Positions 2,804 to 50,850 of a stretch of 64,000 nt of DNA are shown here, in pieces; within the stretch, counting starts at the first letter, position 1, and every line of letters starts with the position of its first letter. The notes beneath the pieces were generated by a model. It had not been told where the DNA came from, did no database searches, and saw only the letters and a list, made by a program, of their open reading frames with translations. Origin of the DNA: Podarcis vaucheri. Its lineage: Eukaryota. The translations under genes were made by a program, and so were the position numbers. The stretch lies in the NCBI GenBank assembly GCA_965113315.1, contig OZ220382.1; one strand, written 5' to 3'.

Positions 2804-3868
2804 GGTCAAAATTAAGGGAGAGAAGAATAACAGAGACCTCATTGTGAGAGTTTACTATAGATCCCTAAGCCAAACGAAGGACATAGATGATGCCTTCCTG
2901 GAACAGATGGCAAAGCATGCAAAAGGAAGGGAGATAGTAGTAATGGGGGACTTCAATTACCCGGATATTTGTTGGATGTCAAACTCAGCCAAGAGCATAA
3001 GGTCAAACAGATTCCTCACTGGCCTTGCAGACAACTCCATTGTCCAGAAAGTGGGAGAAGCAACATCTTTATCAACATCTTTATCAACGACTTGGATGAT
3101 GGACTCAAGGGCATCCTGATTGCATTTGGGCAAAAAAAATGAGAGGCACAAATACAAGATGGGTGACACCTGGCTTGAGAGCAGTACATGTGAAAAGGAT
3201 CTAGGAGTCTTGGTTGACCACAAACTTGACATGAGCCAATAGTGTGACGCGGCAGCTAAAAAAGCCAATGCAATTCTGGGCTGCATCAATAGGAGTATAG
3301 CATCTAGATCAAGGGAAGTAATAGTGCCACTGTATTCTGCTCTGGTCAGGCCTCACCTGGAGTACTGTGTCCAGTTCTGGGCACCACAGTTCAAGAAGGA
3401 CACTGACAAACTGGAACGTGTCCAGAGGAGAGCAACGAAAATGGTAAAAGGCCTGGAAACGATGCCTTATGAGGAACGGCTAAGGGAGCTGGGCATGTTT
3501 AGCCTGGAGAAGAGGAGGTTAAGGGGTGATATGATAGCCATGTTCAAATATATAAAAGGATGTCATATAGAGGAGGGAGAAAGGTTGTTTTCTGCTGCTC
3601 CATAGAAGTGGACACAGAGCAATGGATCCAAGCTACAAGAAAGAAGATTCCACCTAAACATTAGGAAGAACTTCCTGACAGTAAGAGCTGTTCAACAGTG
3701 GAATTTGCTGCCAAGGAGTGTGGTGGAGTCTCCTTCTTTGGAGGTCTTTAAGCAGAGGCTTGACAACCATATGTCAGGAGTGCTCTGATGGTGTTTCCTG
3801 CTTGGCAGGGGGTTGGACTCGATGGCCCTTGTGGTCTATTCCAACTCTATGATTCTATGATTCTATGA
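2804..3868 (+). mobile_element. CR1 LINE fragment with two internal deletions, same subfamily as 45013-48575
   Basis: ORF2 pieces (VYYRS...[10 protein letters not shown]; [20 protein letters not shown]) near-identical to the long CR1, with 3' (ATTCTATG)n tail. Confidence 0.97.
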
Positions 3869-11097: not shown

Positions 11098-12572
11098 TTT
11101 TATTTATACCCCGCCCTCCCCAGCCAAGGCTGGCCTCAGAGCGGCTTACAAGCAATAATAAAAACAAGTTAAATGATTACAACTTAAAAACAAAATTAAA
11201 AAATACAACATACAACAATATTGAATCATTAAAATATTAAAATGTAGCCTCATTGCAGAAGGAGAAGGAAAAGAAAAAAGAAAGAGAGGGAGGGAATCAA
11301 ATTGGCTCCAAGCCAAAGGCCAGGCGGAACAACTCGCCCCGCAGAAAGAAATCAGATCCTGCAGAAAGAAAATTAGGCCCCGCAGAAAGAAATCAGATCC
11401 TGCAGGGCCCTGGTCTCGTGAGGCAGAGCGTTCCACCAGACCAGAGCCAGAGTTGAAAAGGCCCTGGCTCTGGTTTAAGCCAATCTAACTTCCTTAGGGT
11501 CCGGGACCACAAGGGTGTTGCTATTTATGGACCTTGAGGCTCTCCGTGGGGCATACCGGGAGAGGCGGTCCCATAGGTACGAGTGTCCTAGGCCGTGAAG
11601 GGCTTTAAAGGTCAAAAGCAGCACCTTAAATCTGACCCTGTACTCCACCGGGAGCCAGTGCAGCTTGAAAAGCACTGGGTGAATATGCTCCCATGGCAGA
11701 GACCCCGTGAGGAACCTCGCTGCAGCATTCTGCACACGCTGGAGTTTCTGGGACAGCTTCAAGGGCAGCCCCGTGTAGAGCAAATTACAGTAGTCAAGCC
11801 TGGAGATGACGGTCGCATGGATCACTGTGGCCAGGTCGGTGCGGGAAAGGTAAGGGACTGTCAGGGAACTGACATCGGAGCTAGAGGCGGAGGGAAGGCT
11901 CTCAAATGATGCTGGAGAAGGGCCCAGCAGGGAGAGAAGCAGCTCAGCCGATGGGGAAGCAAATCAGTGCAACACCAGGGATAAAGGGGGGCAGATGGGG
12001 GAATCGGAGAGAGGGCTCCAGGACTCTTCACCGGACACCAGCGGGGAGAGCACGGGTCCTCCGCTACCCACGCCCTCCCTGCGCAGAAGACTTCCGCGCA
12101 GGGAGAGTAGGAGGAGACTTGGCGTCAAACAACTTTTGTGTTGGAAAAGGTTTAAGAAATGCCCACTGAACAGATTCTGTTAGCGACTGAGGCAGCCACG
12201 AAGTGAAGGGCTGTCCAGACAGAAAGGTTTAACAAGGCAACACAGCCAGGAGTTGCGGTAACTTACGCACGAGCAACCCCACACTCATTACAGGGACCAA
12301 CTGCTTGATGCAGCGAAGGTGGAAAAATGTCGCCTTGGCTGTTGCTGTAACTTGCGCCTCCATGGAAAGGGAGGCATCAAGGATTACACCCAAACTCTTA
12401 ACGAAAGGCAATGGCACTAATTGGGCCCCCGCAAGAGAAGGGAGTTGGTCCCTCATCCCCATGCCATCCCAACCCACCCATAGGACCTCTGTCTTCGAAG
12501 GATTTAGTTTCTATCGGCTCCCACGAAACCATGCAGCCACAGCTTCCAAGCATCTGGTCAATTTGACAACCT
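11097..12572 (-). mobile_element. L2 LINE 3' fragment interrupted by a solo LTR
   Basis: SRLDYCN...LQRVQNAAAR...LHWLPVEYRVRFK (11475-11825) and VKSLGVILDASLSMEAQV (12293-12477); 3' UTR ending tttatttataccccgcc on the + strand. Confidence 0.93.
11859..12292 (+). mobile_element. Solo LTR (Gypsy-like), 434 bp
   Basis: TG...CA termini, perfect 5-bp TSD GGGAC (11854-11858 / 12293-12297), cleanly splits the L2 coding sequence. Confidence 0.85.
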
Positions 12573-13719: not shown

Positions 13720-13953
13720 TCATAGAATCATAGAACTGTAGAACTGGAAGGGACCCCAAGAGTCATCTAGTACAACCCCTAGCTATGAAGGATTCTCAGC
13801 TAAAGCATCCATGATTACCCAACCTCTGCTTAAAACCCTCCAAGAAGGAGAGTCCACCACCTTCTGAGGGAGTCTGTTCCACTGTCAAATGGCTCTGACC
13901 ATCAGAAAGCTCTTCCTGGTGTTTAGCCAGAATCTCCTTTCTTCTAACTTGAA
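13720..13953 (-). mobile_element. CR1 LINE 3' end (older subfamily), inside a hAT-like remnant (~13425-14037)
   Basis: tcatagaatcatag tail; C-terminal ORF2 remnant; host ends ...gggttggccctg like 60430-60473. Confidence 0.85.
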
Positions 13954-30420: not shown

Positions 30421-32129
30421 TAAAGGATTCAAGTTTTCCCTGCAAAAAAATCTCCAAGAAAGGTTGGAAATTTACTACTGGCAGGAGAGCAGGGGAAAAC
30501 AGCTTGTACAGCTGCTCCAAGTGTCTCACCACCCCCATTCAATCACCCTCCATGGGTTTCTGCTTCCTGGCCAGCAGAAACATTCCATGGGGGGGGGGTT
30601 GCTCCATTCTTCCACCCACCTACCTGTCAATTTTGTTCCTAGGGTCCTTCTACCCTCCAACTGCCACCAGCCTCCCCACAAGCAGGGAGCAGCATTATTT
30701 CTGGTGGGTGGGGGAGAAACTGGATAAAAATAAACCATCTCAAGCAACTTCCAAGACTAGCAGGAAGAGCACTGAGAGGTCCTGCAGCAGCACTGGGTGC
30801 TGGGAGCTACCCAGCCACTGACCCACTGACCACCACCCCCAGCTCAATTTTCCAGTCACTGGAGGTAGGCAGGGTGCATGTGCATGCACAAAGTGCCTTG
30901 CTGCTTGGGGAAAGGGACTGGAACGGACAGGATTCACAGAGAAAAAGGCACTTCCCAGCCTCTGTCAAGAGTGCCCTCCTTACTTTACATCATCTCATGT
31001 ATAGATGTGAAGCCTGATAACACAACCCCTGCATAAGTAGGGGAACGCCTGTACTTGTTGTGTAAGCAAAGGAGAGCTCACCCATAAGTAATCCATAATA
31101 CAAAATGGGATCTGCAGTTTTTTGTAGGAAGGAGAAATATGGAATAATTTGCACATTATGCATCAGGCCGTAAGGCTCCCACTGAGTTCAGCTGAGTCAA
31201 ATTGCAGTCCTTGGGCTCATGTATTTTCAGTGTGTGGCAAAATACACACTAATTAGCACAACTTTGAACCCTTGGCAAAACAGTTAATTTCTTTCTGAGG
31301 GAGAGGTAAAACTTAATTTCCAGTACTCTGCTTATTGTGATAACAACTGGCAACACAAGCTGTAATGAATAATTGATATCTGTAGGTACTGCGAGCAGAT
31401 TTATTTTGGATATTTGCTGTTGTTGTTTCTAAAAAAACTGTTGATAGTTTCTATATTTTGATAACTTTACTATGTCTACTTCTTTTTAATGTCTCTTGAT
31501 TTTATTGGTATTTTCTTATGAATATTTTATATTATTTTATGCAAAGCACTTTGAGATTTATTTTTATTAAGTGATATATAAATCCGGTTAAATAGAATAA
31601 ATAAAAATAGATTGTCATTTTGCTGTTGAAAATTGAGCTGGGCCTCACGGCAAGCATTGAAAATGAAGGATTGCTAAATTATGAGGATCAGCAGCAGCAT
31701 GGGGTGGGTGGGTGAGCTGAAGAAAATGTTTCATTTCCTTCCATCTTTACAAAGAAATGCCAACTTCCTTCCTCTAACCAAAAACTCTGGCACTGTCTCC
31801 CCATTAATCAGCAGAAGGCTTCTCCTACTAGTTATTCAGGAGGCTGGCATCCATCTTGACAGCAGATCTTGTACATTTGAATAGCATCCGCTGGGGGCAA
31901 AATCATGGCATGCCAAGATTTTTTTGCAGAAATTAATTCATCTCTGAAGTTAATTCTATGTTCATGTCCAGCTCAAATACACAACCTCCCAGATAACATT
32001 TCAGTACGAATCTTATGCAGTACGATACTCTTGTGACTGACAAGGGAAGCAAACTAACCGAACATAACGCAGAGGGGAAGTAATAATTTTATGCATGTTA
32101 CTGGGTTGGGGGTGAAGGGAAGCCCTTGG

Positions 32130-32337
32130 GAATTAGATGATCCACTGGGAAAGGAAACTAATGCTGACGAAGACAGAATTGGGATTCAATGTGACCTTGG
32201 TAGATTGGAGAACTGGGCCCAAACTAACAGAATGAATTTCAGTAGGGACAAATGTTTTCCTGCATTTAGGCAGGAAGAACCGGCTGCACAAACATAAGAT
32301 GTGGGACACCTGGTTTACCAGTAGTGCATGTGAAAAA
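32130..32337 (+). mobile_element. Old CR1 RT fragment
   Basis: EDRIGIQCDLGRLENWAQTNRMNFSRDKC aligns with CR1 ORF2 [29 protein letters not shown]. Confidence 0.85.
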
Positions 32338-35162: not shown

Positions 35163-35562
35163 NNNNNNNNNNNNNNNNNNNNNNNNNNNNNNNNNNNNNN
35201 NNNNNNNNNNNNNNNNNNNNNNNNNNNNNNNNNNNNNNNNNNNNNNNNNNNNNNNNNNNNNNNNNNNNNNNNNNNNNNNNNNNNNNNNNNNNNNNNNNNN
35301 NNNNNNNNNNNNNNNNNNNNNNNNNNNNNNNNNNNNNNNNNNNNNNNNNNNNNNNNNNNNNNNNNNNNNNNNNNNNNNNNNNNNNNNNNNNNNNNNNNNN
35401 NNNNNNNNNNNNNNNNNNNNNNNNNNNNNNNNNNNNNNNNNNNNNNNNNNNNNNNNNNNNNNNNNNNNNNNNNNNNNNNNNNNNNNNNNNNNNNNNNNNN
35501 NNNNNNNNNNNNNNNNNNNNNNNNNNNNNNNNNNNNNNNNNNNNNNNNNNNNNNNNNNNNNN
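35163..35562. other. Assembly gap (400 N)
   Basis: Run of N. Confidence 1.
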
Positions 35563-37789: not shown

Positions 37790-38850
37790 GTGATATTAGT
37801 GTTATATGCTCAAACCATCTTGCCCCAGGGAACCACCTGGCTGCTGAATTCCGCCCTAGCTGATGTTTCCAACCCATCTTCAAAGTCAGCCCTCCACACA
37901 ACATGATGAAGGTTGCCGGAGTACAGACAACAGAAATTAGGTTATCCCTGCCCAGAGAGGGAGGTGCTTGGGCCACCGGCCAAAGTTGATGGAAGGCACT
38001 CCCACCGAGGCCGCCTGAGCCTCAAGCAACAGCAGTGGATCCAGAAGTACCCACTAGCTTCTTTGGAAGGAAGGTAACAGCATCAAAAGCAGGCAACTTC
38101 ACATCCATCCGGTTTAGGGAACCACCCACTAACAGTGCCCCAATCTTATCTAGATTGAGCTTATGTTTACTGGCTCTTGTTCAGTCCATTACTGAAGCAA
38201 GACCAGCAGATCAGTCCAGCAGTTCTAGTGACACATGTGCAGTTGTCATGGGGAAGCAGAGCTGAGTGTCATCAGCATATTGTACTCCAAAACTCTGGGT
38301 GACCCCCTCAATGGTTTCATGTAGATGCTAAACAGCATGGGGGATAGAACTGAACCCCACATTGAAGGCTCCACAGGGCTGACTCTCTAACCATCATCCT
38401 CTGAAAACGACTATCCAAGGAGGACTGGAACCACCACAAAGTGGTACCACCAACCCCTAACTCAGACTGCTGCAGAAGGATACCATGGTTGAAAGAACCA
38501 AAGGCCAATGAGAGACCAAGAAGAATTAACAGGGATGCATTTCCTCTGTCTCTCTCCTGAAAGAAGTCATCATACAGGGTGACTAGAGCAGTTTCCATGC
38601 CAAAACTGGGCCTAAACCCCAGTTGAAATGGATCTAGAAAATTTGTTTCCTCCAAGGACACCTGGATCTGGTCCTTGACCACCAGCTCAAGAACCTTGCC
38701 CAAGAAGGGGAGATTAGCAACTGGCTGGTAGTTACTTCGGTATTCTGAGTCCAGGGAAGGTTTCTTAAGGCGTGGCTTACCACTGCCTCTTTCAAGCAGG
38801 CATGGACCACCTCCTCTTGCAAGGAGGCATTAATCACCTCCCTGGTTCAG
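37790..38850 (-). mobile_element. Degenerate L2 LINE RT/C-terminal fragment
   Basis: LDPFQLGFRPSFGMETALV...LLILLGLSLAF, QYADDTQL (38260-38283), RNSAARWFPGARWFEHIT. Confidence 0.88.
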
Positions 38851-44609: not shown

Positions 44610-45097
44610 CAGTGGTGTAGCACAGGTTGCCAGGGTCAGGGTGCCAGAGGGAGGGTGGCTGTGGCAGATCAAGACCTCACCACTGAGTTGTAGCAGTCTG
44701 ACAGGAGATGAAGGAGACCAGGCAGCATGTGCAGAATGAGGCAAAATGAAGGGAGGGTGAAAGAGGCTTGAAGCCACCCCGTGAGAAGGGCAGATCTGAG
44801 GGCTGTGCTGCCCCATTCGTAAAGGAGGAGGAGGCTGACAGAGCCTCTTGCCTCTCTTTGGTGGGCAGTGGCAGCTGCTGTGGTGCCCTCCCCCTCCCTC
44901 TTGAGTGGCCCAAGGATGGGGTGCCTTTGAGCACCCCTTCACTGGTCACAAGGAGAAGGAGATGACACCCTGAAGGTCTGGCCCAGGCCAGGCATGTGTT
45001 GGCTTGCCCACTTAGAATCATAGAATCATAGAATCATAGAGTTGGAAGAGACCCCAAGGGCCATCGAGTCCAACCCCCTGCCAAGCAGGAAACACCA

Positions 45098-48018
45098 TCA
45101 GAGCACTCCTGACATATGGTTGTCAAGCCTCTGCTTAAAGACCTCCAAAGTAGGAGACTCCACCACACTCCTGGGCAGCAAATTCCACTGTCGAACAGCT
45201 CTTACTGTCAGGAAGTTCTTCCTAATGTTTAGGTGGAATCTTCTTTCTTGTAGTTTGGATCCATTGCTCCGTGTCCGCTTCTCCGGAGCAGCAGAAAACA
45301 ACCTTTCTCCCTCCTCTATGTGACATCCTTTTATATATTTGAACATGGCTATCATATCACCCCTTAACCTCCTCTTCTCCAGGCTAAACATGCCCAGCTC
45401 CCTTAGCCATTCCTCATAAGGCATCGTTTCCAGGCCTTTGACCATTTTGGTTGCCCTCCTCTGGACACGTTCCAGTTTGTCAGTGTCCTTCTTGAATTGT
45501 GGTGCCCAGAACTGGACACAGTACTCCAGGTGTGGTCTGACCAGAGCAGAATACAGTGGCACTATTACTTCCCTTGATCTAGATGCTATACTCCTATTGA
45601 TGCAGCCCAGAATTGCATTGGCTTTTTTAGCTGCCGCGTCACACTGTTGGCTCATGTCAAGTTTGTGGTCAACCAAGACTCCTAGATCCTTTTCACATGT
45701 ATTGCTCTCAAGCCAGGTGTCACCCATCTTGTATTTGTGCCTCTCATTTTTTTTGCCCAAGTGCAATACTTTACATTTCTCCCTGTTAAAATTCATCTTG
45801 TTTATTTTTGCCCAGTTCTCTAATCTGTCAAGGTCGTTTTGAAGTGTGATCCTGTCCTCTGGGGTGTTAGCCACCCCTCCCAGTTTGGTGTCATCTGCAA
45901 ATTTGATCAGGATGCCCTTGAGTCCATCATCCAAGTCGTTGATAAAGATGTTGAATAAGACCGGGCCCAAGACAGAGCCCTGTGGCACCCCACTAGTCAC
46001 TCTTCTCCAGGATGAAGAGGAACCATTGATGAGCACCCTTTGGGTTCGGTCAGTCAGCCAGTTACAAATCCACTGAGTGGTAGCATAGTCAAGACCGCAT
46101 TTTACCAGCTTCTTTACAAGAATATCATGGGGCACCTTGTCAAATGCCTTGCTGAAATCAAGGTAGGCTACATCCACTGCGTTCCCTTCATCTACCAGGC
46201 TTGTAATTCTGTCAAAAAACGAGATCAGGTTAGTCTGACATGACTTATTTTTCAGAAATCCATGCTGACTATTGGTGATCACAGCATTCCTTTCTAGGTG
46301 CTCACAGACTGTTTGCTTAATGATCTGCTCCAGAATCTTCCCTGCTATTGATGTCAGACTGACTGGGCGGTAATTATTTGGGTCCTCTCTTTTCCCCTTT
46401 TTGAAAATAGGGACAACATTTGCCCTCCTCCAGTCTGCCGGGACTTCGCCTGTTCTCCAGGAATTCTCAAAGATGACTGCCAGTGGTTCTGAGATCACAT
46501 CTGCCAGTTCTTTTAATACTCTTGGATGCAGTTCATCTGGCCCTGGAGACTTGAATACATCTAAACTAGCCAAATATTCTTGTACTATCTCCTTAGTTAT
46601 TCTGGGCTGTGTTTCCTTTGCTGAATCATTTGCTCCAAATTCTTCAGGTCGGGCATTGTTTTCTTTATCGGAGAAGACTGAGGCAAAGAAGGCATTGAGT
46701 AGTTCAGCCCTTTCTGTGTCCCCTGTTTGCATTTCACCATCTTCTCCTCTGAGTGACCCCACAGTTTCTTTGTTCTTCCTTTTGCTACGAACATACCCAT
46801 AAAAGCCTTTTTTGTTGCTTTTAACCTCTCTAGCAAGCCTGAGTTCATTCTGTGCTTTAGCTTTTCTGACTTTGTGTCTACATGTGCTGGCTTTTTGTTT
46901 GAATTCCTCTTTGGTGGTTTCCCCCCTTTTCCATTTTTTGTACACATCCTTTTTTAATCTTAATTCAGTTAAAAGTTCTTTAGATAGCCACCCTGGCTTC
47001 TTTAGGCACCTTCCATGTTTCCGTCTCATTGGTATTGCCTGACGTTGTGCTTTTAGTATCTCCCTCTTAACAAACTCCCAGCCATCATGAACTCCCTTTC
47101 CTTTTAGTATTGTTGTCCATGGGATCTCACCCAGCACTTCCCTAAGTTTTATGAAGTCGGCTTTCTTAAAGTCAAGAAATTGAGTCCTAGTATGCTTGGC
47201 TGCTCCTTTCCGCTGTATAGTAAACTTCAGAAGAGCATGATCACTCGCGCCTAATGATCCTTCCACATCTACCCCACTAACCAGGTCATCAACATTGGTT
47301 AGGACCAGGTCTAAAATGGCTGTTCCTCTTGTTGCTTCTCCCACTTTCTGGACAATGAAGTTGTCTGCAAGGCCAGTGAGGAATCTGTTTGACCTTATGC
47401 TCTTGGCTGAGTTTGACGTCCAACAAATATCCGGGTAATTGAAGTCCCCCATTACTACTATCTCCCTTCCTTTTGCATGCTTGGCCATCTGTTCCAGGAA
47501 GGCATCATCTATGTCCTCCGTTTGGCTTGGGGATCTATAGTAAACTCCCACAATGAGGTCTCTGTTATTCTTCTCTCCCTTAATTTTGACCCAAATGCTC
47601 TCACTTTGGCTTTGAGGATCTAAATCTTGGATCTCTTCACAGGTATACACATCCCTGACATATAACGCCACTCCTCCTCCTTTCTTGTCTGGTCTGTTCT
47701 CTGAAATAGATTGTATCCCCCCATTATTACATTCCAATCGTGGGACTTATCCCACCAGGTTTTAGTGATGCCTATTATGTCATATTTAGTTTGCTGTACC
47801 AAGAGCTCAAGCTCATCTTGTTTATTTCCCATGCTTTGCGCATTAGTGTACAGACATTGAAGTCCATTAATCATTCCGCCGTGTCTCTTATTTAAGGATT
47901 TTTTCCTCCCACCACTAGGTCCGTGTGCTGTTTTCTCCATTTGGTCTATGACATTTGGATGATCATCTTCATTAATTGATAGGCTCCTACCTTCAGGAGC
48001 ACTGTCTCCCTCCCCCAC
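45098..48018 (-). pseudogene. CR1 ORF2 (APE endonuclease + reverse transcriptase) with one 1-bp frameshift
   Basis: LQCLYTNAQSMGNK...YNLFQR (47620-48018 ORF) joins [14 protein letters not shown]...GDFN...SDH...[10 protein letters not shown]...FADD (45098-47737 ORF) via a missing base near 47697; ITETWW motif reads ITKTWW. Confidence 0.96.
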
Positions 48019-48023
48019 ATTAG

Positions 48024-48575
48024 TTAGTTTAAAGCCCTCCTGATGAGGTTTCTGAGATTTTTGGCAAAAACATTTCTCCCAACCGTTGTGAGGTGCAGCC
48101 CATCACTTGCCAGAAGTCCATCTTCAAGAAACTGCAGTCCGTGATCTAAGAATCCAAACCGTTCCTGTTTACACCATTTGCGAAGCCAGCTGTTCACTTC
48201 CACTATTTTCCCCTCTCTCCCTGGGCCACGTCGTTCAACTGGAAGGACAGACGAGATGACAATTTGTGCATTTAGTTGCTTCAATTTCCTGCCGAGAGCC
48301 TCGTAGTCTCTTTTGATCTTCTGGAGGCTATTGCTTGCAGTGTCATTGGTTCCCACATGAACCAAGAGGAAGGGGTATTTGTCAGTGGGTTTTATGATTC
48401 CTTGCAGTCGTTCAGTTACATCTTGGATCTTAGCCCCGGGGAGACAGCACACTTCCCGAGACATCTTGTCAGGCCCACAGATCACTGCTTCTGTTCCCCT
48501 CAGTAGGGAATCCCCTATCACCACTACACGCCTCCTCTTGGGTTTGGTCGGGGTTCTTCCGTGAGCATCTCCAGC
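48024..48575 (-). pseudogene. CR1 ORF1 C-terminal SGNH/GDSL esterase domain (5'-truncated)
   Basis: VVVIGDSLLRG, LPGAKIQDV, VHVGTND, DGLHL motifs; ends RRALN*. Confidence 0.93.
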
Positions 48576-50504
48576 CTTGGTGAGGGAGCCTGTTATGGGG
48601 GCAGCTGGTTGTGCAGCCTTGTGCTCCTTCAAAAATCTGTGCCCAAGGCCACAGCCCCCCCTGGCCCTCCCCATGTTATGCCCCTGGGCTTATGTAAGTT
48701 GTCATCAAGAAACACTTGAGGACATTAGCCTGGGGTCAGCTGATTTTGGGGGTTTACATGATCTGTGTATGAGGAATTCATTGGGTCCACACACACCGAA
48801 GCAAACTTAACCTGATCTTCATCTATGGCAACTGACAATTTCTGTTTATTTCCCACAGTGTGAATACATGTAATATGCATTACACTGTATGCCAATAGCA
48901 AAACCACCCTCCCGGAGTGTGGATACTTATGTGGTCATAACAGCGCCACCCATGCAGAAGTGATATCAGCAGGCAGACTTTAAAGTGGAGACATGAGAAG
49001 GGGTACATTCCAAAACAGCCCAGTGAAAACTGAACATGATCACTTGATGGGAGCGTTTGTGTGGAATGGAAAACCATGGGAACAAAATGGAGCTGAAAGG
49101 GAACATGACTGGCTGGAGCCCTGAGCAGGAGCATCCTGAGCTGCAAAGTTCAGCTGCAAGGCCAACTTACATATTTGATAACTCATCTGTTCAGAGACTT
49201 GTAAACTGTGTCCAGACACACTGTCAGACTTTCCTGCAATGAAATTCGTTAATGTGGCACATCCTAGCTGCAGTGCCCTTTTTCCTGCATGACATTGAGC
49301 TACTCTTCTCTATACATTTTAGCCAAGCAATATGTTCCTCTCTTTTAAAGTTTATTTTAAATATCAGTCATGCACATAGTCTTCCATCGAAAGAAAGCCA
49401 TCCCTCTCCTGTCTACTCCTTTCCCTTGTTTGAAGCTTATTTTAATCAAAGTTGGAGCAACATTCCAAAACTTAAGCACTCCAGCTTGGAAACGAGGCTC
49501 CAGTAACACAACAATGCCTACAGCATCCGGATAAATTACTTGGCATGGGTATTCCTGTTTACTTCAACTTCAAGTGAAGGAGGCAGAATTAGTCTGCTCC
49601 CAGAGGTTAGATTAAAAGGACCTCATTTAGCAAAGTCATGGACAGAGCAGAAAAGCCAAGTGTTTGTTAAGTAATGCCGAATTTGCCAAGTGCAGCACCA
49701 GTGATCCATGCAGCCAAGAATTCCCTCCTCTGAGCAAAACTGGCCAATTTCTGAAGTGCTCAGGATGGCAAAACTGATTCTCTAACACAACATATCTGCA
49801 CCTGGCTCAGCAAGGAGAGATGGGAAGGGTGTGTGTGTTCTCTTCTTTCCAAATCCCCTGCCCCCAATATCTCACAGGCAACCAGCTTGAGCCTTGAAGC
49901 ATGAAATACGGTTGTCTTTGCTTGGATAGGCATTGAAGTTATTAATTATAACCCAGATTGCAATCCCTGTCTGTACATTGGTCTATACATTTTTAAGATG
50001 CTTTTCATTCCCCCAAGGTACCCTACAGTACAGGGCCTGTTTGCCTAGTGATGAGGAAGAGCTGAGCTCTCAACTCTTGCGCCTTCCAAGAGGCACTTGA
50101 GGCCGTAAACTGCCCTCAATGTTTTCTCATCCCAACAGCATCTTGGCCAAAGTCTGTGCCAGAAACGGTGGGTGGGGAAAGGGGGAGAGGGAGAAACTCT
50201 ATAGCGAGACCACCATCTTCCTCTAGTTTATTTATAAAGGGCCTACAATCACTACATGCTAAACAATCCATTTTAAATATGCAATACTGTGCCTGCAGGC
50301 CCACAGTGGGAAATGGACTGAAATTATAGGAAGAGAAAGGGGGTGGACAAGTAGGGTAGTGGCAGAAGTCTTTTAGCCTTAACACTATTCTAAACTTAGG
50401 TATTGTTACTGGTGAGTTTAAGTAAGGTAAAATAAGCATACAGAAGAACAATCCTTACTGAAGCAGACACAGCATGGCTTCTGCAAGGACAAGTCCTGCC
50501 TCAC

Positions 50505-50850
50505 AAATCTTAAGAGTTATTTCAGAGTGTCAACAAGCATATAGGGAGAGGTGGTTTGGTTAACATAGTATACTTGGACTTTCAAAAAGCATTGACAAAG
50601 TAACTCACCAAAGACTACTGAGTAAGCTTGACAGTCAAGGAATCAGAGGAGAGGTTGTTTTGTGGATCAGGAGCTGATTAAGTTGCAGGAAGTGGAGAGC
50701 AGGAATAAATGGACAGTTCTCCAGATGGAGGGATGTAAAAAAATGGAGTCCCTCAAGGATACCGGGACTTCTGTTTTTTAGCTTGTTCATAAACAACCTA
50801 GGGTTAGGAGCAAGCAATGAGGTGGCCAAGCTTGCTGATTATACAAAATA
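50505..50850 (+). mobile_element. Old CR1 RT fragment
   Basis: IVYLDFQKA-DKV, GINGQFS-WR-V-GVPQG remnants. Confidence 0.85.

Follow-up and report, generated by a model that had tools for sequence, protein, structure and literature searches.

The 64,000-nucleotide stretch of Podarcis vaucheri DNA analysed here (contig OZ220382.1 of assembly GCA_965113315.1; this whole 64-kb stretch is called the window) carries on its minus strand a decayed copy of a CR1 long interspersed nuclear element (LINE), whose two open reading frames (ORFs) meet at a putative -1 ribosomal frameshift site. The copy is laid out as follows (UTR, untranslated region).

45013-48566, minus strand: CR1 LINE copy of a lacertid-like family, inactive and 5'-truncated (tblastn, ORF layout, read depth)
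48027-48566, minus strand: ORF1 remnant with an SGNH/GDSL esterase domain, C-terminus ..NLIRRALN (Pfam PF13472, PDB 4c1b, homologues)
47623-48026, minus strand: ORF2-frame linker and N-terminal part of the APE endonuclease (LQCLYTNAQSMGNKQDELE..), ended by a premature stop at 47622-47620
47690-47700, minus strand: copy-specific 1-nt indel that disrupts the ORF2 frame within the endonuclease (contig depth, RNA reads)
45098-47737, minus strand: remainder of ORF2, the C-terminal part of the endonuclease and the reverse transcriptase, 879 aa (Pfam RVT_1, Exo_endo_phos)
45013-45097, minus strand: 3' UTR with a terminal octamer repeat (CTATGATT)x3, the repeat itself at 45039-45016

The ORF1 esterase matched Pfam PF13472 (E 4.7e-10). 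Its nearest solved structure was the esterase of zebrafish ZfL2-1 ORF1p (PDB 4c1b, E 2.5e-23), and the closest proteins to ORF1 came from Podarcis and Zootoca, at 87-90% identity. Pfam detected RVT_1 (E 2.8e-34) and Exo_endo_phos (E 2.4e-10) in ORF2, and the piece of endonuclease (EN) in the ORF2 frame was 87% identical to an intact lacertid protein, P0121, which has Pfam EN domains. The features of the CR1 clade, namely an esterase ORF1, an ORF2 with APE EN and reverse transcriptase (RT), and 3' octamers, were all present (PF13472, PF03372, PF14529, PF00078). Judged by its domains, its 3' octamers and its closest homologues, the element would belong to CR1 rather than to L2.

This copy is dead, being truncated at its 5' end and carrying an indel that breaks ORF2. 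Repeat read depth drops steeply at ~48566, where loose ends also lie. This collapse indicates that ORF1 is 5'-truncated and that the ATG at 48674, previously taken for that of ORF1, is flanking DNA outside the repeat. A 1-nt indel near 47696 splits ORF2 into two frames, 47620-48018 and 45098-47737. The frame-intact state at this position, which has one letter more than the window copy, made up ~30% of contig depth and 18 of 20 RNA reads, suggesting that the expressed copies are mostly other, frame-intact members of the family. RNA reads covered the element on both strands at ~15-35x, which is not proof of autonomous transcription. Copies were used as found throughout the analysis.

The features of the ORF1/ORF2 junction in the lizard copy, all on the minus strand, are these.

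48034-48102: ORF1/ORF2 overlap, in which 23 codons of open -1 frame precede the heptamer (the stop of that frame is at 48105-48103)
48027-48033: slippery heptamer T_TTA_AAC in the X_XXY_YYZ phase of ORF1 (direct reading, frame translation)
48024-48026: ORF1 stop TAA adjoining the heptamer, TGA in most family copies (direct reading, contigs and reads)
48017-48026: 10-nt spacer, which includes the stop and is kept in length and not in sequence (ungapped alignment A2, columns 31-40)
48005-48018: G-rich tract GTGGGGGAGGGAGA, with its GGGGG core at 48016-48012, 10 nt 3' of the heptamer (alignments A2 and A3)
47983-48000: inverted repeat GCTCCT-GAAGGT-AGGAGC, a candidate hairpin, unsupported as a stimulator (direct reading, folding)
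47938-47940: earliest ORF2-frame ATG, 93 nt past the heptamer (codon 32), not conserved in other squamate or bird CR1s (frame translation)

Both direct reading and frame translation bore out every sequence statement of the earlier note on this junction. The last codons of ORF1 are AGG GCT TTA AAC TAA, with the heptamer at 48033-48027 in phase, and ORF2 lies in the -1 frame, which is open from 48102 through the heptamer and reads ..QEGFKLTNVGEGDS.. / ..QEGFKLTNVGEGDSAPEGRS.. across the site. Neither a stop-start overlap of the UAAUG (SART1) type nor an ORF2-frame AUG at the ORF1 stop was present at the lizard junction: the triplet at 48018 is GTG, the ATG at 48020-48018 belongs to the ORF1 frame, and the first ATG of the ORF2 frame is the one at 47940, followed by a second at codon 54, immediately before the EN motif LQCLYTNAQSMGNK. 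Past its stop, the ORF1 frame contains the ATG at 48020 and a 24-codon ORF (MWGRETVLLKVGAYQLMKMIIQMS*, 47953-48020, minus strand), which is probably meaningless and could capture reinitiating ribosomes.

Variants within the family were read from four lacertid-like sequencing runs, in which the family is extremely abundant. No variant at a frequency of >=10% was seen at any position of the heptamer in these four runs. The TAA stop and the C at 47983 that had been read in the copy are correct for it, whereas most family copies differ at both positions: most contigs and reads show C on the plus strand at 48025, making TGA the commonest stop of the family, and position 47983 is U in most copies, which puts a G.U pair into the inverted repeat.

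At the protein level, we found 153 ORF1 homologues, from lizards, snakes, turtles, crocodilians, birds, frogs, sharks and rays; in turtles, crocodilians, frogs and sharks the heptamer is implied by protein C-termini only. The statement in the earlier note that many CR1 ORF1s end in RALN proved sound: 87 of the 120 homologues listed end in LN, 55 of them in ALN, and most of the others among the 120 are visibly truncated or chimeric gene models. The final L and N were invariant in 21 diverse homologues, equal in this to the catalytic G-D-S, in an alignment with a mean column identity of 37%. The residue preceding LN is variable (A, T, Y, G, S, V, D, C, L or F). In 85 of the 87 an NNU codon can nevertheless specify it, as the first U of the heptamer demands, and the two exceptions, both E, are close relatives of one another.

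Several of these esterases have misleading database names (P0035, P0015, P0048, P0074, P0103). One of them, on a 2.9-kb contig and probably vertebrate contamination, goes under the name of a Klebsiella pneumoniae SGNH hydrolase, and in Varanus the name 'Replicase polyprotein 1a' occurs. Other CR1 ORF1s sit inside host gene models (NUBP1, shisa-4, ribosomal protein S24).

The comparison at the DNA level covered the lizard family and bird-like copies. Junction DNA from outside the lizard family came from one metagenome scan, which gave 80 CR1 loci, nearly all from a single sample and bird-like. These loci are 40-52% identical to the lizard ORF1, represent at least five subfamilies that share ancestry, and include none with an intact ORF2; variation within one subfamily was regarded as neutral decay and as uninformative on selection. 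Scans of viral and genome contigs with the ORF1 alignment and with the junction DNA pattern returned no match. In 63 of the 71 bird-like loci whose match reaches the last ORF1 residue, TTTAAAC is followed immediately by a stop (TAG in 51, TGA in 10, TAA in 2), and the remaining 8 are single-copy point variants. The subfamilies differ in stop codon and spacer, not in the heptamer, and copies with an altered Ala codon (TCT, ACT, GAT) retain its final T. When the lizard and five bird CR1 subfamilies were compared, GCT TTA AAC was identical in 15 of 15 representatives, as the earlier note had proposed to check, although lizard-versus-bird codon identity at identical amino acids elsewhere was 0.33-0.53 (~0.3 for Leu) and TTA makes up 6% of conserved Leu codons. 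The invariant blocks of the ungapped alignment of the lizard and the five bird subfamilies were C-TTTAAAC-T and GGGGG. Conservation of the heptamer at the junction is more than chance.

The frames agree with this picture. Of 59 bird copies, 50 have EN in the -1 frame with respect to ORF1, and the others are decayed. In 43 copies the heptamer is intact and EN is in the -1 frame; of these, 35 are open in that frame from the heptamer into EN, and 29 have a -1-frame stop just 1-2 codons upstream of the heptamer (for example, CAT TGA GAG GGC TTT AAA C). A ribosome could thus change frame and still make EN essentially only at the heptamer itself. Neither free synonymous variation at the three terminal codons nor stops between heptamer and EN in good copies, both named beforehand as grounds for doubt, were seen. 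The sequence of the site, its phase and the two frames, like their conservation, were observed directly.

These observations make it probable, at roughly three chances in four, that CR1 LINEs use a programmed -1 ribosomal frameshift to produce an ORF1p-ORF2p fusion, and that the heptamer in the window is the fossil of this signal in a dead copy. Few heptamers shift as readily as U_UUA_AAC on mammalian ribosomes (PMC5009743), and ORF2 lacks a conserved initiation codon of its own, as seen in the bird copies and in squamate N-termini. Most ribosomes would end ORF1 at the UGA or UAA right after AAC, yielding ORF1p with its coiled coil and esterase. In a minority, the P-site tRNA-Leu on UUA would re-pair to UUU and the A-site tRNA-Asn on AAC to AAA, a slip of one base backwards; these ribosomes would next read CUR (Leu) and then a linker of 30-90 residues leading into EN and RT. 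The product would be an ORF1p-Leu-linker-EN-RT fusion, analogous to Gag-Pol and made at a low ratio to ORF1p, with the predicted junction ..RALN-L-TNVGEGDSAPEGR. The slip, the fusion protein and its stoichiometry are what we infer from the comparison of sequences.

The junction resembles the -1 frameshift sites of retroviruses and of coronaviruses (ORF1a/1b of infectious bronchitis virus, IBV, and of severe acute respiratory syndrome coronavirus, SARS-CoV) in several ways: heptamer and phase are the same; a structural or accessory ORF is followed by a polymerase ORF in the -1 frame, with which it is fused (in CR1 presumably); the site falls within the overlap of the two ORFs; and conservation is at the nucleotide level. 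The pro-pol site of deltaretroviruses also uses U_UUA_AAC. In contrast to these viruses, no pseudoknot (no systematic search for these was made) or stem-loop was found at 5-8 nt in CR1, which has a G-rich tract at 10 nt instead; the 0-frame stop adjoins the heptamer; and CR1 is a cellular retrotransposon without long terminal repeats (non-LTR) and without a protease to split the fusion. By heptamer, phase, frame and conservation, the junction appears to fit the canonical class of -1 frameshift signals, the 3' structure that defines this class being unconfirmed. A 0-frame stop right after the heptamer, as in CR1, is found at luteovirus and dianthovirus sites (barley yellow dwarf virus, BYDV; red clover necrotic mosaic virus, RCNMV). 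These sites differ from CR1 in their heptamer (GGGUUUU or GGAUUUU), in an adjacent bulged stem-loop and in a pairing partner 4 kb away. Their stimulator consists partly of this long-range pairing (PMC5009743), for which the only counterpart in CR1 was a weak match, in one bird subfamily, between the G tract and a complementary motif of the 3' UTR.

Other LINEs offer further comparisons. L1, by reinitiation, and SART1, by UAAUG coupling, face the same task: a bicistronic LINE RNA has to yield little ORF2p compared with ORF1p. Both make a separate ORF2p, and SART1 needs a stop-start overlap, whereas CR1 has a -1 overlap with a canonical heptamer. Insect LINEs such as jockey have overlapping -1 ORFs. 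HeT-A and jockey are like CR1 in being non-LTR elements with a proposed frameshift; that of Drosophila HeT-A was proposed within gag, unlike the CR1 junction, and a review of recoding names only HeT-A and TART among non-LTR elements (PMC5009743). Reviews call the mechanism of LINE ORF2 translation unclear (PMC3894237, PMC3708506). We found no literature that links CR1 or L2 to programmed frameshifting, with an earlier remark in older CR1 papers being possible; a 2026 survey of the CR1 group and a 2014 paper on amniote CR1 mention neither overlap nor frameshift. Likewise, no earlier description was found of a canonical heptamer common to a whole vertebrate-wide non-LTR clade.

Downstream of the heptamer, GGGGG occupies the same columns, 10 nt past the site, in 11 of 11 sequences of alignment A2 and 15 of 15 of alignment A3, and further Gs follow it in the lizard/bird alignment. 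A turtle ORF1 model in which a mutated stop is read through (P0067, RALN-WKFGGDGWEM) implies a G-rich tract at the same place. A cis-acting RNA signal positioned with reference to the shift site should show just this combination of fixed spacing and free spacer sequence, and the conserved tract is the likely stimulator, although its conservation may partly reflect the G-E/D-G peptide that it encodes. One short viral signal provides a lead only: that of the virus behind porcine reproductive and respiratory syndrome (PRRSV), CCCANCUCC, lies 11 nt 3' of its site and is bound by nsp1beta and PCBP (PMC5009743). Like the CR1 tract, it is a short, unstructured motif of the homopurine/homopyrimidine type ~10-11 nt from the site, without stable structure, and the 10 nt of CR1 are nearer to its 11 nt than to the 5-8 nt of classical pseudoknots. 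It differs in being C-rich where the CR1 motif is G-rich, and no binding protein is known for CR1.

The earlier note had pointed to a possible pairing of the G-rich tract with CUCCU and to a hairpin at 48000-47983. The tract, its GGGAG/CUCCU pairing and the inverted repeat are present, but neither the hairpin nor the CUCCU pairing is supported as a stimulator, and folding was unremarkable: the inverted repeat occurs in the minimum free energy (MFE) fold, is weak and begins 27 nt downstream of the heptamer. Downstream folds of bird subfamilies A, B and C gave z ~0. A bird hairpin at ~+31 (73% paired, 2 compensatory pairs) was no better than shuffles. Subfamily D, with a TGA stop, has a 13-bp hairpin (z -3.9) that starts ~12 nt downstream and uses the G tract as its 5' arm. 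In this TGA subfamily (L010, L020, L008-L012), two strong hairpins come one after the other past the junction, from +12 to +45 and from +47 to +78 (MFE -40.5 kcal/mol, z -3.9 in L010), and among the folded representatives L010 is the only one of the subfamily with a classical-looking stimulator. Rfam gave no relevant match.

Three structural roles for the tract were considered and found no general support. A G-quadruplex as universal stimulator was rejected, since a two-layer quadruplex was predicted only in some bird B and D copies and not in lizard or subfamily A (ViennaRNA, G-quadruplex energies); natural stimulators of this kind were not yet known according to a 2016 review (PMC5009743). 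A consistent local pairing partner was not found, the only strong one being that of subfamily D. Long-range pairing of the tract with the 3' UTR was inconsistent among lineages, with a match in bird B copies only. In those copies (L005, L007, L013), the G tract GGAAGGGG is complementary to the conserved CR1 3' UTR motif, GUCCCUUCCAACCC, ~2990-3050 nt past the heptamer, and the lizard 3' UTR motif GGGGUCUCUUCCAAC (45041-45057, minus strand) pairs less well with the G tract. The complementarity could hint at luteovirus-like pairing over a long range, or it could be chance.

A broader and more specific version of the frameshift model appears doubtful to us. It holds that ORF2p of the CR1 group would be made, across vertebrates, only as an ORF1p-ORF2p fusion by frameshifting on UUUAAAC, and that the stimulus would come from the G tract at its fixed 10 nt, not from a stem-loop or pseudoknot. 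The tract might then act through a bound protein (possibly ORF1p itself, as feedback), through a G-quadruplex or through contact with the ribosome.

Several points weigh against programmed frameshifting in CR1. The lizard downstream region (84-90 nt) folded no better than shuffles (z 0.07 and 0.45). A strong downstream hairpin was seen in one bird subfamily only, with no systematic search for pseudoknots made, and the 10 nt between heptamer and tract exceed the usual 5-9 nt. The support is comparative, drawn from DNA of the lizard family and mostly one metagenome. L1 sets the precedent of a LINE that makes its ORF2 product without frameshifting, and even without an AUG. Furthermore, the ATGs at codons 32 and 54 in the lizard lineage would permit separate initiation of ORF2 there.

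This last point leads to the alternative of a separate translation of ORF2, in which ribosomes reinitiate after termination or start at a downstream AUG or non-AUG codon as in L1 and SART1, the heptamer being kept for another reason at the RNA level, such as the context of termination and reinitiation. We consider this unlikely overall, and tenable chiefly where a lineage happens to possess an ATG, as the lizard family does. Reviews treat the translation of LINE ORF2 as unresolved and cite reinitiation for L1 and SART1 (PMC2881922, PMC3894237), and the scarcity of strong stimulatory structures in most lineages also speaks for it, as do the two lizard ATGs. Some ATG precedes EN in 22 of the 35 open bird copies. 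However, the other 13 have none, as the earlier note had anticipated in expecting no conserved ATG, and positions differ among bird subfamilies, with an ATG at codon 22 that alternates with GTG in a CpG context. The first Met of the ATG-less copies, the M of ..YTNARSMGNK.., is residue 44 of the -1-frame product and lies inside EN: position 12 of the Exo_endo_phos profile aligns at residue 41, so that a start at Met 44 would cost the domain its first part. The L1 endonuclease suggests, by analogy, that a catalytic Asn would be in the lost segment. ORF2 fragments of other squamate CR1s differ in their N-termini and have no conserved Met between the GEG motif and EN. Separate initiation also meets no UAAUG-type overlap at the junction, where the ATG at 48020 belongs to ORF1's frame, and it leaves unexplained why the heptamer is phased and synonymously conserved and why the overlap is so narrow.

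Alternatively, LN might be kept for the function of ORF1p, with the identity of GCT TTA AAC inherited or coincidental and the heptamer without a role in translation. L and N are indeed conserved at the protein level, and the bird subfamilies, sharing ancestry, are not independent samples. Even so, this account is very unlikely. Lizard and birds share all three terminal codons despite the rarity of TTA (6% of conserved Leu) and a codon identity of ~0.4 elsewhere, changed Ala codons still keep their T, and ORF2 is consistently in the -1 frame, opening right at the heptamer with the stop always adjoining. A frame change in the RNA itself, with the T/A runs as sites of transcriptional slippage or of editing, can be dismissed as having a negligible chance, as nothing was found in its favour, these runs are only 3 nt long and no indel occurred at 48027-48033 in RNA reads at ~45x.

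Elements of the CR1 group are the dominant retrotransposons of most non-mammalian vertebrates, and how LINEs translate ORF2 is a long-standing question. If CR1 frameshifts as proposed, it would follow a Gag-Pol-like strategy unlike that of L1, and its ORF2p would carry the coiled coil and esterase of ORF1p. Frameshift efficiency would then set the ORF1p:ORF2p ratio, and the fusion would offer a simple basis for cis-preference and for assembly of the ribonucleoprotein. Such a mechanism would amount to widespread cellular -1 frameshifting in vertebrates, directed by a compact cassette of heptamer, 10 nt and G tract. Should the G tract, and not a stem-loop or pseudoknot, prove to be the stimulator, it would represent a natural use of a class known so far only from arteriviruses, cardioviruses and synthetic constructs. 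Annotations in which CR1 ORF2 begins with its first ATG are probably in error.

No second copy of the ORF1/ORF2 junction was found in the 64-kb window, including its other CR1/LINE fragments. A run of 400 N at 35163-35562 marks an assembly gap or masked sequence. The other 5'-truncated CR1/LINE RT fragments in the window lie at 2805-3785 (plus strand), 32109-32337, 50434-50848, 38377-38814, 13811-13950 and 11421-11861. The first of these encodes protein 94-96% identical to the 3' part of the same CR1 family.

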